The notes beneath the pieces were generated by a model. That model searched no databases, was not told where the DNA came from, and saw only the letters and a list, made by a program, of their open reading frames with translations. Of a stretch of 64,000 bases of DNA, positions 30,500 through 49,613 are shown piece by piece (position 1 is the stretch's first letter; every line of letters begins with the position of its first letter). The stretch comes from Hemiscyllium ocellatum (lineage: Eukaryota). The DNA is taken from positions 35,260,121 through 35,324,120 of the forward strand of contig NC_083435.1 in NCBI RefSeq assembly GCF_020745735.1, given 5' to 3'. A program made the translations under genes and the position numbers.

Positions 30500-30693
30500 T
30501 TATCCATTTGGCTCTTCTGCTCTCTGACAGTCTCTGGTGCTCTCCGAGTGCACCTGCTTGTCACTGTCAGGTTGATCACCCCATCTCTTCCCCCAGAAAC
30601 CAATTCCAATGATGACCACAAGAAGAGTGAGCGAGATAGCTGTTGCTCGAATCACTGTTTCCAATTTAATGCCTCCATGTGACATTCGCTCTG
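30500..30693 (-). CDS. MHC class I-like heavy chain, exon 5 (connecting peptide, TM helix, cytoplasmic tail, stop)
   Basis: Phase-1 NAGNAG acceptor (TCAG/CAG, exon starts 30693 or 30690). AERMSHGGIKLETVIR, then hydrophobic ATAISLTLLVVIIGIGFW, then GKRW...EEPNG-TAA. Total CDS 52+261+276+273+194=1056 bp (351 aa). Confidence 0.85.
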
Positions 30694-30859
30694 CTGACAC
30701 ATACAGTTTACATTAAAATGGCATGAATAAATAATAATTTTGAAATGAAATCACAGTGTACTTCAATGAACTGCAAACTAATGCTATACTTGCAGCATCA
30801 CATATTAAAGAAAGAACATTTGAATTTATGTATTACCTTTCAAGAATGTGGGATTAACG

Positions 30860-31195
30860 TTGGCCTTGGTACAGGCTGGGGTGGGGGAGTCAAGAACTAG
30901 AGGGCAAAAGGTTTGGGGTGAAAGGGGAAAGATATAAAAGAGACCTAAGGGGTAACTTTTTCACACAGAGGGTGGTACTGATATGGAATGAGCTGGCAGA
31001 GGAAGCGGTGGAGGCAAGTATAATTGCAACATTTAAAAGGCATCTGGATGTATATATGAATACTAGGGGTTTGGAGGGACATGGGCCGGGTGCTGGCAGG
31101 TGGGACTAGATTGGGTTGGGATATCTAGTCGGCATGGATGAGGTGGACCGAAGGGTCTGTTTTCTTGCTGTACATCTCAATGATTCTACGACTTT
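30860..31195 (+). mobile_element. CR1 3' fragment
   Basis: ORF 30918-31109 closely matches the C terminus in 6490-6741. Confidence 0.85.
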
Positions 31196-32674
31196 ATAAC
31201 TATGGGCAAAAAAATGGGGCAATAACTTAATGGGATTATCATTGGGTTATTGAAAGGTTTTAAACATAATAATTTAAGAAACTAACTTGCAGAAGAATAC
31301 TTGAGGAGCACAGTCGTAAACATCTAGAAGCAGAAAACTCACAAGTAGACAGAACTGTTAGTTAAAAAATACAAGGGACCATTTGTTCTTGGAGCCAACT
31401 TTTTTTTGCATGATAGCAAAAGGACAATATTGATAATGTCACAGTCAAACCAAAAGTTGCTTATTCTTTGAAACTCTGAGCCTTGAAATAAGTCATGAAA
31501 ACATCCAAGGGATCAAACAGGGGAAGGGAATTGATATACACAGGTCAGAGATGAATCATTATAGAAAGACAAATTGGAGCCTACAGTGCCCTCTGATCTG
31601 ATAACATAGTGCCTTTCCACTAGCCATACATTACAATTTGATAGACAGACCTACATAATGACTGACTAATTGTACTACTGCTCTATGTATGATGTACACC
31701 TAATCAAAAGTAATTATTCAACTTCTGTAACTACACCTCTTAATTAGTACGTGCTAATTTCTTGTTACAAAATCCAAAAGTATGCCTGCTTCTGTGATCT
31801 TTGATTTGGGGTCTCCAACATTTCCATTTTGTATATACTCTGGAATCCCTTGCAAAAGCTCGGTCATAAAGGCCATTTTCACATTCTATAGATCCCTGTC
31901 TGGTCACTCACTGCAGGAAAGAGTCAGAGGCTACTAGGGCTGCTACCAGACCCTGGAAATTCCTGCAACAGTTATTGGCAGAGCCAGGAGACTGGATTTG
32001 TTATGGGAAGACAGTGTGACAGTGACATGGTAATTAATGCAGTGGTATGGATAGAGAGCAGACAAGTTGAATATATTTGGGGATTGAGACAGAGTCACAG
32101 GGAGAGAACAGAAGACTGGGATTTGTTTTGGATTGATACAAGGTTTCAGGAAGGGAGTGGAATTAATTTGGTATTAATTTAGAAACAATACAATCACAAT
32201 AGGCCAAATATCTGTTCTATGGACTGATCAGTCATAGCGAGATAAAGATGTAGGACATAAGAGTAGGAGTATGTTACTTGGTCCTCCAAGTCTGCTCTGC
32301 AATTCAGGAAAATCATGGCTGGGATCTCTTTTCTACTTTCCTGTCTGCACCCCATTAGGCTTTACTTCCATGTCCACCAAACATCTATCTAAGTCAGCCT
32401 GAAAAAGAAATTAAAGGCTACCTTCTACCTTCTGGAGAAGGGAATTCCACACTCTGACCTTGCTCTGGGAGAAGAAGTGGTGAGACTGCAAATTAAGTTT
32501 TGGGCACCACACCAAGGGAAGGATAAGTTGGTCTTGCACTGTGCATAACATGGCTTTACCTTCAGTCAGTTGGGCTTGACAGAAATTTGGAAGTCTCTTC
32601 TGTGAAAGGCCGTTGATGCCATGATAACTTGTCATTTGAAAATATTTCACTGACAGAGTTTTATCAGCCAAAGA

Positions 32675-46807: not shown

Positions 46808-47097
46808 GGCATCACGGTGGCACAATGGTTAGCACTGTTGCCTCACAGCACCAGAGGCCTGGGTTCAATACCCGACTCAGGTAACTGTCTGTGTGGAGTT
46901 TGCACATTCACCCCATATCTGCGTGGGTTTGCTCTGGTTTCCTCCTAAAATGTGCAGGTCAGGTGAATTAGCCATGCTCAATTGCCCGTAGTGTTAGAAG
47001 AAGGGGTAAATGTAGGGGAATGGGTCTGGGTGGGTTGCTTGTCAGAGAGTCTGTGTGGACTTGTTGAGCTGAAGGGCCTGTTTCCACACTAAGTAAT
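46808..47097 (+). mobile_element. HE1/V-type SINE
   Basis: Same consensus. Confidence 0.85.
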
Positions 47098-49561
47098 TGA
47101 TGTTTAAATATCCAAACGCTTATATTTCCAAATTCCTCCCTTCGCCAAGCTTGTCCCCTTGCGTCCAATTCCCAGTATTGAGTTGTCCCACTTTCCATTG
47201 ACCTCAAGGACTGACAGTGGCCTACTGCCCTTGTCAATGTGGACGAACATCCCCGAATGATGACTGCCCAGACTCTGAATAATCTCTGATAAGCTCACTA
47301 GCTGCCTTCCAATGAATCCCCTGACATCCACCTGCGGACTGCCCATTATTTCCTCTCTGAACTATGGTGAGACAGACCCCCTGATCCTGACTGCCCCAAA
47401 CAGATGGCTGACCATGCCCAAGTCCCTGAGTTGTGAACAGACAGCTCCCACCACCAACTTTGACATGTCTGAGGACTACTCCCTTTAAACTTTGAGGCAC
47501 AGCCATTTGATTCAAGCATTCAGAGTGTGTTTGCTGTGAAATCTGCTGCTGTATGCTGTAGCTGTGAAACTGACACAGCTTAGTGCTGTGCAGTAACATG
47601 TATGCCCCATATCTCAGATGAGACATAGGAGCAGAACTGGGCCATTCAAAGGTGCTGTTGAAATGTGACATGCAAAAATGCAAGGCAAGGCATCAAAGTA
47701 GACACAAAGTCAATGAGTACTCAGAGAACAACTGAGCAAACCCCAAGACGCAGCCCGGTCCAGTCCATGTGATGGGTGCTATCCCTGCACCCAATGTGTC
47801 CTTGCAGTTGCCTTCCAGTTAAAGGTGCAAAACTAAAGTGCAGAAAAGTTTTATGAGTAGATCAGAGATGGACCATGAGGTTGCAGTGAGGCTCATACAA
47901 GTTTGATATCAAATTCTGCAGATGGGGGTCCGTGCACTTGACGCCTGTCAAGTGTGTCCAACACAGACTTTCAGAGGAGTGAGCAGCTAGCTGGAGCTGC
48001 TAAATAACTGTTCTGACTTTTGTGTTGGAAATTGTGCACCTCCCGTGCAACCATAACCTTGTATGCCCCGCTCTGTCTTAGCATCCTATGATCTGCATGC
48101 CCTTGTTTGCTATGATCTGCTTGTACTGCTAGCAAGGCAAAACTTGTCACTGTATTAGGGTGAATGTGAGTGCATTAAATCAGATTAGTTAGAAATTAGT
48201 TAACATCATTCAGTTTCTGTGCATCAAATGGGAGAGTGGGAAATGGGTAATATTGAAGCGAATTTAACTAATAATGAAGTGGTAGTGAGTAGACCTCTCA
48301 CCATTCAATCTTAAACACTTCGTTGGAAAGTGGAACCTATTGCTCTTGACATTGATATGCTGCTTGCTGGCCATCTCCTGCAATTTCCCTTACTTCCCTG
48401 CATCGTTCAGGGGCTGGGAAGAGTCTACTCCCTGTGCTTTCTTCACAGCATTCTTTCTTACTTAGCTTTGTGTCACTTGAAAATTTAGCTGCCAGGCCTG
48501 CATTTCCCTCATCTAAGTCAAAAGGGAACAGTCAAAGCTCCAGCACAGAGCCTCATGGGACACCATCGGTCACCTCCTGCAAAATGAACAATGACCCATT
48601 TATGCATTCCGTTTCTGCACTGTCACATCGTCACTCATGTTTGTGGTAGATCTCCTCCATCCTCACCACCAGAAACAGCAAACTGGTAGAAAGCAAAATG
48701 TGGAATGGAAAATGGAAGGAGCAGCCTCCATACTCCACCATTCCAGATTCAGGCTCATCATCGACTTTGACATCATTAGTCCAAGATTATCTCATATCCT
48801 TTGATGTCAAGAATATCTAGAAACCTGTTGACTTCTGCCTTCAACATATTCAATGACTATCTTCCCCGAGAACTGGTGAAGGTCAGAGCCAAAAGAATAA
48901 TGTTCACTCATAACAACAACTCACTGCACTTTAGCTGCTGCTGAAATGCAAGCCAACCTTGACCGTCCCTTCAGCCGAAATGGCCCATCCCTCTACTTCC
49001 ACCATCTCCCACACCCACTCCCTTTCCTGCCACCCCCACTTCAATGCCACAATTGTGGGTAGGTTTCACTTCTGTTCCTCAGTTCAGGTTCAGATGCTGC
49101 CTTTGACCTTGACATGAGAAAAACATTCCTTAAAACATCACCCAAGTGCGGTGCAGAGTTCCTTTCCCTGACCTTGCCATTTTACATTTTCTCTCTGTTT
49201 CCTTCATAATGTCATTCCTCCCTTTAAATTCCATTAGCATTCCCAGTTATTCTCCCCTCCCTTCGCCTTCACTTCTTTTCATTCGAATTCCAAGTTACAG
49301 CTCTAAGACTTCATTGACAATAGATCTATCTCCATAAACAGCTGCCCGGATCCTGAGCTTAGCAAACAAATCTTTATCACAATTTCTGGCAGCAATTCTC
49401 TTGCTCCTGGTACAGGGAGGACCCTTGCCCTGGATCACTCACACACCCAGGACAATGAAACATTCAAAGCCTAGACAGACTCTCAATGCTATATTTTGAC
49501 GCTGAAATCTTGGGGTACCTTTCAATTCTATCCACATATGTCAGCTGTTTGAACTGCTTAC

Positions 49562-49613
49562 CTGAGGAGACTATGAACACACAGTAAACGTGCAGTAAAG
49601 TAACAAGCAGCAT
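49562..49613 (-). CDS. MHC class I-like heavy chain, exon 1 (signal peptide MLLVTLLHVYCVFIVSS)
   Basis: ATG at 49613, 17 hydrophobic codons plus one G, then donor GTAAGC. Phase 1 joins the alpha1 exon to give GAT (Asp). An X1-X2-Y motif lies about 130 bp upstream. Not in the ORF track (too short). Confidence 0.85.

Follow-up and report, generated by a model that had tools for sequence, protein, structure and literature searches.

An apolar-grooved MHC class Ib lineage of sharks and rays, sister to UGA and a candidate presenter of lipid-like ligands

CD1 is known from amniotes only, which has made the origin of MHC-like lipid presentation a long-standing question. Recent work on the shark molecules UFA and UGA puts CD1-like function back at the base of the jawed vertebrates. 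Both have been described as CD1-like and MHC-linked (PMC12562908; PMC10751288). A 2025 review gives them, as a personal communication, as lipid-binding by crystallography and mass spectrometry; for UGA the bound lipids are reportedly comparable with the ligands of CD1d (PMC12562908). The lipid evidence for UGA and UFA is taken here from that personal communication and from the titles of PDB entries 9CH4 and 8GM8. Lipid-presenting class Ib molecules of sharks are already known as an idea; what is added here is a third lineage, for which no description or name was found in the literature. In the supplement of a 2023 MBE paper, shark genes are labelled just 'MHC-Ib', without lineage names. The gene described below lies in a window of 64 kb, the whole stretch of DNA of the epaulette shark, Hemiscyllium ocellatum, that was analysed.

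The locus holds an MHC class I heavy-chain gene whose five exons lie on the minus strand; each junction has the canonical AG/GT, and all are in phase 1 (Table 1). Joined, the exons give 1056 nt, or 351 codons and a TAA stop, in agreement with the first-pass annotation, which had proposed five phase-compatible exons and a frame of 351 amino acids. The ATG at 49613 is the earliest in-frame ATG past a TAA stop. The signal peptide that it opens agrees with the N-termini annotated for the orthologues in Pristiophorus and Heptranchias and is identical in Chiloscyllium punctatum (L001:33029-33080). Exons 2-5 are 100% identical to RefSeq XP_060706688.1 ("MR1-like", Hemiscyllium ocellatum), a model without a signal peptide; the gene model with its leader exon is better than the RefSeq model, which is corrected by this addition. 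Exon 5 opens on a tandem CAG/CAG (NAGNAG) acceptor. The distal acceptor, giving VPW-ER without the alanine, is used in the RefSeq model and in all orthologue models, so that a mature product of 350 residues is more likely, on this sequence comparison, than one of 351; the proposed frame holds and its length is probably one residue too long. The cytoplasmic tail comprises 30 residues, and the sole N-glycosylation sequon (NST) lies in alpha2, on exon 3. The introns are long and repeat-rich, and a tblastn search of the 64-kb window found no class I exons other than these.

Table 1. Positions in the window of the exons and associated features of the class I gene
Feature	Position	Strand	Remarks
Exon 1: start codon and 17-residue signal peptide MLLVTLLHVYCVFIVSS	49562..49613	-	ends in phase 1; GT donor directly after
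Exon 2: alpha1 domain, including the apolar helix	41780..42040	-	AG/GT borders, phase 1
Exon 3: alpha2 domain with the C101-C164 pair and an extra invariant C99	38555..38830	-	
Exon 4: alpha3 Ig C1-set domain, both Ig cysteines present	34615..34887	-	
Exon 5: connecting peptide, transmembrane segment, cytoplasmic tail, TAA stop	30500..30693	-	sequence reading
Alternative exon 5 acceptor, 3 nt downstream	exon start 30690	-	
33-bp minisatellite, 24.6 copies, intron 2; noncoding for the class I protein	40559..41368	.	Tandem Repeats Finder score 1137

By fold and domain plan the protein is an MHC class I molecule. The queries were the separate exons and the near-identical protein P0083. Pfam MHC_I matches the alpha2 exon at 1.3e-15 and the alpha1 exon weakly (1.5e-3), and C1-set matches alpha3 at 5e-18. 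Exon 2 matches PDB entry 9CH4 (UGA) at 1.2e-20 with about 50% identity, and the top PDB matches of exon 3 are MR1 (4e-17) and then 9CH4 (1e-15). The AF2 model (pLDDT 92) has a platform of eight strands and two helices and matches class I structures at Z 27-30. Of the cysteines of the class I disulfides, which presumably pair, two occupy mature positions 98 and 161, corresponding to 101 and 164, and the alpha3 pair lies at 200 and 255. Q96, G120 and D122 are all present, as had been read from the letters alone, and the Q96 and G120 columns are nearly invariant in the family alignment; the protein may pair with beta2-microglobulin.

The gene is intact, conserved and a non-classical class I gene. 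Its orthologues occur in at least 17 elasmobranch species, sharks and rays alike, at 56-95% identity, and the lineage is mostly single-copy. In C. punctatum the orthologue likewise has these five exons, equal in length and identically bordered, and its frame of 351 codons is intact; the two genes differ at 12 synonymous and 15 single-step nonsynonymous sites, a count that leaves out one two-step codon change and gives, from few substitutions, a pN/pS of 0.34. An unexpressed or decaying copy, its open frame a remnant, might be suspected from the repeat-rich introns and from the RefSeq model that begins without a signal peptide. Set against this are the intact frame and canonical splice sites here and in C. 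punctatum with the pN/pS value just given, a leader exon conserved as far as Pristiophorus and Heptranchias, and the retention of orthologues across the shark and ray species, which leave decay scarcely credible. Downstream of the class I gene there is a TRIM gene, in the window as well as in C. punctatum and Pristis. In two Chiloscyllium species the protein accessions of this lineage and of UGA are consecutive, suggesting that the two genes are neighbours, and in Leucoraja both are on a contig of equal size, 127 kb. The lineage appears to adjoin UGA within the class Ib section of the MHC.

The first-pass annotation had suspected a poorly characterised shark class Ib lineage and left its assignment to a tree. 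In the maximum-likelihood tree the gene falls into an elasmobranch-wide clade of its own (100/100), and this is the sister (95/75) of an equally well supported UGA clade (100/100). Each of the two clades divides into rays and sharks, a topology that places the separation of the lineage from UGA before the shark-ray divergence. On this tree the UGA-type molecule has an equally old paralogue in sharks and rays, with a groove more apolar and more conserved. The closest solved structure is 9CH4, 'shark nonclassical MHC class I, UGA', at 4e-66 by sequence, and the AF2 model superimposes on it with TM 0.92, rmsd 1.9 A and Z 29.7. Both molecules are MHC class Ib, occur in sharks and rays and are 40% identical over alpha1-alpha3. 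They have in common an alpha1-helix motif, AG(F/L)HG-(L/I)-(V/I)-KG, and the pocket residues L5, Y9, T66, G97, M152, Y155, F156, L159, L160 and D163.

The gene is not UGA itself, since it belongs to the sister clade; its identity to 9CH4 is no more than 40%, while P0181, a true orthologue of UGA, matches at 2e-152. UGA keeps the anchors Y7, Y59, K146 and W147 where the lineage has F7, H59 and R146, and it carries an N86 glycosylation sequon that the lineage lacks. Position 99 is Phe in UGA and an invariant Cys in the lineage. UGA is low-copy, with three genes in Pristis and three in Pristiophorus. Its models are labelled 'F10 alpha chain-like' or 'MR1-like' by NCBI (e.g., XP_060706367 of H. 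ocellatum). UFA (PDB 8GM8) is likewise an elasmobranch class Ib molecule and has the alpha1 motif PRQQWMA in common with the gene. The gene is not UFA either: it is about 30% identical to the UFA-type protein P0026, which matches 8GM8 at 4e-90 and stands outside the clade formed by the lineage and UGA. The grouping of UFA with that clade is weak (88/28); the UFA branch is very long, and its alpha2 domain is built differently.

The groove was mapped on a MAFFT alignment of 75 sequences. At the nine peptide-terminus anchors the protein reads F7, H59, Q84, A123, L143, R146, L147, L159 and Y171, where the classical-type rows of the same alignment read Y-Y-R-F-T-K-W-Y-Y. A single anchor, Y171, is kept (1/9). 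Members outside the carpet sharks (Orectolobiformes), to which W147L is confined, keep W147 as well. By these anchors the protein does not belong among the classical class Ia molecules; shark UDA keeps most of them. Apolar residues occupy positions 24 (L), 63 (M), 67 (M), 70 (L), 73 (L), 74 (V), 80 (I), 81 (F), 114 (I), 116 (L) and 156 (F), and the same mapping gives Y9 and V26. Small residues (G97, C99 and A123), invariant across the lineage, stand in the centre of the floor. In the 23-residue stretch of the alpha1 helix, K and E are the only charged residues. The alignment reproduces all nine anchor readings of the first-pass annotation exactly, together with its list of apolar groove positions, and its count of two charged residues in the helix is confirmed by direct reading.

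Across 35 pocket positions, apolar residues (AVILMFWC) number 24-25 in the lineage, against 18-22 in UGA, 18 in UFA and 14-16 in the classical-type rows, and the pocket is 70% aliphatic or aromatic. Within the lineage, pairwise identity is 82% in the pocket, 73% elsewhere in alpha1-alpha2 and 65% in alpha3, and 10 of 500 random position sets matched the conservation of the pocket. The pocket is the best-conserved part of the protein and is near constant across the shark-ray split. That alpha1-alpha2 (73-82%) is better conserved between species than alpha3 (65%) is the opposite of the class Ia pattern.

The lineage is the closest paralogue of UGA, a reported lipid binder, so that this gene probably carries lipid-like ligands too; at 40% overall identity and 43% identity of pocket residues, however, transfer of function from UGA is not safe. 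The explanation that best accounts for the whole, to which we give a probability of about 0.6, is a class Ib gene, sister of UGA, whose product would associate with beta2-microglobulin and present hydrophobic ligands in the manner of CD1. The terminus clamps of classical molecules are replaced, and the pocket is lined almost wholly with Leu, Ile, Val, Met and Phe. At the cell surface, paired with beta2-microglobulin, the molecule would hold acyl chains or other hydrophobic ligands in its groove in CD1 fashion and may show a conserved class of ligand to T cells or innate-like lymphocytes. The open cavity, the lipid ligand and the recognition by T cells are what we infer from the sequence. The first-pass annotation had proposed a lipid-like or small-molecule ligand, and the lipid side of that proposal, still an extrapolation, fits both the sisterhood with UGA and the apolar, conserved pocket. 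Should it be right, cartilaginous fish would have at least three candidate lipid presenters rather than two.

A groove of this composition could also hold nothing. The bulky apolar side chains could close it by mutual packing, and the product would then serve, in the manner of HFE, FcRn and the MIC proteins, as a receptor, a chaperone or a ligand of NK-type receptors; the good matches by structure include HFE and zinc-alpha2-glycoprotein. The invariance of G97, C99 and A123 at the centre of the floor, however, favours space over packing. The pocket positions also outdo the remaining helix and sheet in conservation, and the nearest relative, UGA, was crystallised as a CD1-like molecule. We consider a self-filled groove distinctly unlikely.

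The ligand may, alternatively, be a hydrophobic peptide or an N-acylated lipopeptide rather than a free lipid, with an acyl chain or apolar side chains in the groove and the peptide partly exposed. Chicken YF1 offers the precedent, its narrow apolar groove taking acylated ligands. Like the gene product described here, YF1*7.1 falls in class Ib and is otherwise built as a classical molecule, and with its N-myristoylated or N-palmitoylated ligands it is among the close structural matches (Z 27); it is, on the other hand, 28% identical and comes from a lineage confined to birds, with no sign of common descent as a lineage. Y171, W167 and R146 (conservative with respect to K146) are kept, W147 is present in most species, and in sequence classical class I is closer than CD1. 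Against peptides, eight of the nine terminus-binding residues are changed, the two N-terminal Tyr (7 and 59) and, at the C-terminal end, positions 84, 143 and 123 included and W147 excepted outside the carpet sharks, and the sister UGA is reported to bind lipids of the CD1d kind (PMC12562908). Peptide or lipopeptide presentation is thus unlikely, if a little less so than an empty groove.

The preferred reading, CD1-like presentation of hydrophobic ligands, does not require that the lineage be CD1. Likeness to CD1 lies in an apolar groove without peptide-terminus clamps, in conservation rather than polymorphism and in the same domain plan, and it is likely to be an analogy of function. In CD1 the acyl chains sit in deep hydrophobic A' and F' pockets; for this lineage the measure of apolarity is the sequence-level count of 24-25 among 35 pocket positions. 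CD1 is absent among the best 60 sequence matches, CD1c ranks 23 among the Swiss-Prot structure matches, and the sole CD1 in the tree, a primate CD1b-like protein, falls outside the lineage clade, a position subject to long-branch effects. On these grounds the lineage is not CD1 by descent, and descent from MR1 is unlikely. Two points count against the lipid reading. In sequence, MR1 and classical class I stand closer to the protein than CD1 does, and the tail lacks a tyrosine-based endosomal sorting motif: no tyrosine, and hence no YXXZ motif of the CD1 type, occurs in the tail of the gene product or of any orthologue. CD1b, CD1c and CD1d use such a motif. CD1a is also without it, so that its absence is not decisive.

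The RefSeq name invites a further reading, an MR1-type molecule whose aromatic and basic pocket would capture polar metabolites of small size. The name reflects the fact that MR1 is the best match among reviewed proteins; alpha1 and the alpha2 helix align with it without gaps and at equal length. Among solved relatives MR1 comes second (1e-59 to 2e-48); it is also the top hit for the alpha2 exon and leads the structural matches in Swiss-Prot, and a Cys stands at the site of its Schiff-base Lys43. The ligand contacts of MR1, however, which are Y7, R9, S24, K43, Y62, W69, R94, I96 and W156, read here Y7F, R9Y, S24L, K43C, Y62M, W69L, R94G, I96C and W156L. With 0/9 kept, the small-molecule half of the earlier proposal is left unsupported. 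There is no basic residue for a polar ligand in a pocket that is 70% aliphatic or aromatic, and the Cys at position 43 is found only in carpet sharks, other members having T, I or A. An MR1-type function is very unlikely, and the name 'MR1-like' is misleading. The gene is a clean target for ligand elution, for structural work alongside 9CH4 and for seeking semi-invariant shark T cells.

The groove has one further peculiarity in its extra cysteine. A C45-C99 disulfide was considered and rejected, C45 being not conserved and the two strands, in the class I fold, lying too far apart in the sheet. Left unpaired, the invariant Cys99 might capture electrophilic or thiol-reactive hydrophobic ligands covalently, which would make this a third CD1-like lineage with a ligand class of its own, and the capture itself would be a thiol counterpart, by analogy, of the Schiff-base capture at Lys43 of MR1. 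We hold this to be a speculative and improbable refinement. Cys99 itself is present in every shark and ray orthologue seen.

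The window gene, a minus-strand non-classical MHC class I gene of five exons, belongs to an apparently undescribed lineage shared by sharks and rays (hereafter the window lineage), the third after the shark class Ib lineages UGA and UFA. Its sequence is best read as that of a conserved class Ib protein whose ligands would be hydrophobic and probably lipid. Lipid presentation is a concept already reached by others for the two sister lineages. According to a 2025 review, UFA and UGA resemble CD1, are linked to the MHC and occur as one or a few copies in sharks and rays, and crystal structure and mass spectrometry suggest binding of lipids like those of human CD1d (PMC12562908; Flajnik personal communication). 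Literature searches found neither a primary paper behind this statement nor any name or description of the window lineage.

The five segments of the gene splice into 1056 nt with AG/GT at the borders and phase 1 at every exon end, giving a reading frame of 351 codons followed by TAA. The first-pass annotation had placed all five exactly. Pfam MHC_I matches the alpha2 exon at 1.3e-15 and, weakly, the alpha1 exon at 1.5e-3, while C1-set matches the alpha3 exon at 5e-18. None of five distinct tblastn queries, all shark class I proteins, found another class I exon in the 64 kb. Exons 2-5 are identical to RefSeq XP_060706688.1 of Hemiscyllium ocellatum, and the DNA is thus almost certainly from this genome. 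The RefSeq model starts at an ATG (MAFPLCDPS) within an intron-extended alpha1 exon and therefore has no signal peptide. The leader exon proposed in the first pass lies 7.5 kb upstream of the alpha1 exon, and its start codon at 49613 is the first ATG in frame past a TAA. It encodes MLLVTLLHVYCVFIVSS, in agreement with how the orthologues of Pristiophorus japonicus and Heptranchias perlo are annotated to begin (MLLVTLLNVYCVP-VSS), and is identical in Chiloscyllium punctatum, with the same donor. Judged from these comparisons, it is a better candidate for the 5′ end than the RefSeq start. Several further orthologue models have odd or truncated N-termini. The exon 5 acceptor is a tandem CAG/CAG (NAGNAG) at which the proximal site yields one extra Ala. 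RefSeq and all annotated orthologue models use the distal site (VPW-ER), so that a product of 350 aa is more likely than the 351 aa first proposed.

Features of the class I gene and its surroundings (window positions)
Feature	Position	Strand	Remark
Exon 1 (leader)	49562-49613	minus	
RefSeq first exon	41780-42068	minus	intron-extended alpha1 exon
Exon 2 (alpha1)	41780-42040	minus	
Minisatellite	40559-41368		intron 2; 33-bp unit, 24.6 copies, 88% matches
Exon 3 (alpha2)	38555-38830	minus	
Exon 4 (alpha3)	34615-34887	minus	
RT-like ORF	33527-34018		intron 4; without Pfam match
Tandem acceptor	30690-30696	minus	exon 5
Exon 5	30500-30693	minus	
TRIM gene, RING + B-box exon	25612-26040	minus	directly downstream of class I gene, same strand
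TRIM gene, PRY-SPRY exon	11496-12029	minus	downstream of class I gene, same strand
Retroelement remnant	52364-53662	plus	ORF with GIY-YIG domain
LINE-type reverse transcriptase fragment	2183-2911	plus	

Orthologues were found in at least 17 species by word-indexed searches and cluster look-ups. They come from sharks (Hemiscyllium, two Chiloscyllium, Stegostoma, Pristiophorus, Heptranchias, two Scyliorhinus, Mustelus, Cetorhinus and Carcharodon) and rays (Leucoraja, Pristis, two Mobula, Hypanus and Hemitrygon), share 56-95% identity with the window protein, mostly occur once per genome and are all named 'MR1-like' by NCBI. When the alpha1 exon was run exhaustively with HMMER against 1.84 billion cluster representatives, a single one ranked above 1e-30, a skate orthologue, and the next group came at 2e-17. 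For Heptranchias perlo, 11 near-identical window-lineage proteins (P0080 and P0193-P0202) are annotated, spread over several unplaced contigs of 76-530 kb; they are either a sevengill copy-number expansion or uncollapsed haplotigs. Outside this species the lineage is single-copy in appearance.

A second group of relatives, about 40% identical to the window protein and low-copy in several species, is UGA, and the protein crystallised as PDB 9CH4 belongs to it. A Chiloscyllium member matches 9CH4 at 2e-152, an entry titled 'Crystal structure of shark nonclassical MHC class I, UGA' in Foldseek. A third, more distant group (protein P0026) matches PDB 8GM8, whose title names UFA, at 4e-90. The first-pass annotation had left the lineage unassigned pending an alpha1-alpha3 phylogeny with the shark lineages. 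In a careful IQ-TREE analysis (49 rows, 270 columns, LG+C20 PMSF; MR1 not among the rows), the window lineage separates with support of 100/100, as does UGA, and the two are sisters (95/75). UFA joins next to them with weak support (88/28), and classical-type sequences and the large shark multigene family fall elsewhere. Within both the window lineage and UGA, rays and sharks form separate clades, so the duplication that produced the two lineages is older than the divergence of sharks and rays. Outside them, a primate CD1b-like protein and a group from chimaeras join each other on long branches, a placement that is not trustworthy. The lineage is not UDA, which reportedly keeps eight of nine peptide anchors (2020 J Immunol abstract). 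UEA is ruled out as well, since it is multicopy and shark-only (PMC12562908).

HLA-A2 numbering was placed by hand on the mature protein and then checked in A1, a MAFFT alignment of 75 sequences. The nine anchor columns read Y Y R F T K W Y Y in classical-type rows (a Pristiophorus protein, sturgeon class Ia and teleost U), which validates them, and F H Q A L R L L Y in the window protein. Every residue of the first-pass listing was reproduced in this mapping, and the original observation is correct. F7, H59, Q84, A123, L143, R146, L159 and Y171 are invariant throughout the window lineage, and most species have W at position 147, with L confined to carpet sharks. Apolar residues (AVILMFWC), counted at 35 positions of pockets A-F, number 24-25 in the window lineage, 18-22 in UGA, 18 in the UFA-type protein and 14-16 in classical-type rows. 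By this count the predicted groove is the most apolar of the three lineages, a new feature together with an invariant free cysteine in its floor. This unpaired Cys99, in a G-x-C-G-C motif of the alpha2 exon, is present in 23/23 orthologue sequences covering the region, from sharks and rays, whereas UGA has Phe at this position. A second extra Cys (HLA position 45, equivalent to MR1 Lys43) is found in carpet sharks only (Hemiscyllium, Chiloscyllium and Stegostoma). The N86 glycosylation sequon at the end of the alpha1 exon, otherwise near-universal in class I, is missing from the window lineage, in contrast to UGA with N-Q-T at this site; the first alpha2 loop holds the sole sequon, N-S-T.

The common ancestor with UGA, the fully remodelled terminus clamps and a pocket that is extremely apolar, strongly conserved and floored by small residues together argue for a hydrophobic, probably lipid, ligand. 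The earlier proposal of a lipid-like ligand is sound. CD1 by descent is rejected for the window gene. The tyrosine sorting motif of CD1 is absent from the window protein, and no cytoplasmic tail of the window lineage contains Tyr. The tails (e.g., protein P0078) carry a variable number of a ~10-residue unit resembling Q-Q-R-L-A-E-T-x-R-D, strongly expanded in Pristiophorus. MR1 by ligand chemistry is likewise rejected, with 0/9 MR1 contact residues kept. An AlphaFold2 model of the ectodomain with A1 as input alignment has a mean pLDDT of 92.2 and standard class I architecture. Its best solved match is 9CH4 (TM 0.92, rmsd 1.9 Å, Z 29.7), followed at about Z 27-28 by chicken, duck and fish class I, YF1, MR1 and chicken CD1-1. 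The modelled fold establishes the class I family and has no power to tell functions apart; the molecule may present lipopeptides as YF1 does, or its groove may be closed and hold no ligand.

Pairwise identity across the window lineage is 82% in the pocket, a value reached by just 10/500 random sets of 35 alpha1-alpha2 positions, 73% in the remainder of alpha1-alpha2 and 65% in alpha3. This is the opposite of a polymorphic classical molecule and is what a class Ib molecule should show if its ligand class is fixed. A pseudogene is unlikely. At the Chiloscyllium punctatum locus (L001) all five exons recur with identical lengths and borders, and the frame is intact. The two genes differ by 12 synonymous and 15 single-step nonsynonymous changes (one two-step codon change was left out), and pN/pS is ~0.34, a ratio of small counts between genes whose introns are also ~97% identical.

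The TRIM neighbour has the same arrangement in Chiloscyllium punctatum (L001:60756 onward), and in Pristis pectinata a TRIM39-like gene stands beside an 'MR1-like' MHC-Ib gene, followed by more MHC-Ib genes (MBE 2023 supplement). In two Chiloscyllium species the accession numbers of the UGA and window-lineage proteins are consecutive, and in Leucoraja the two genes are each on contigs of 127,421 bp, which indirectly suggests that they are neighbours. Retroelement remains lie on both flanks of the class I gene, and the ORF with the GIY-YIG domain is read as a putative Penelope-like element. The intron 2 minisatellite is a source of long spurious ORFs on both strands.
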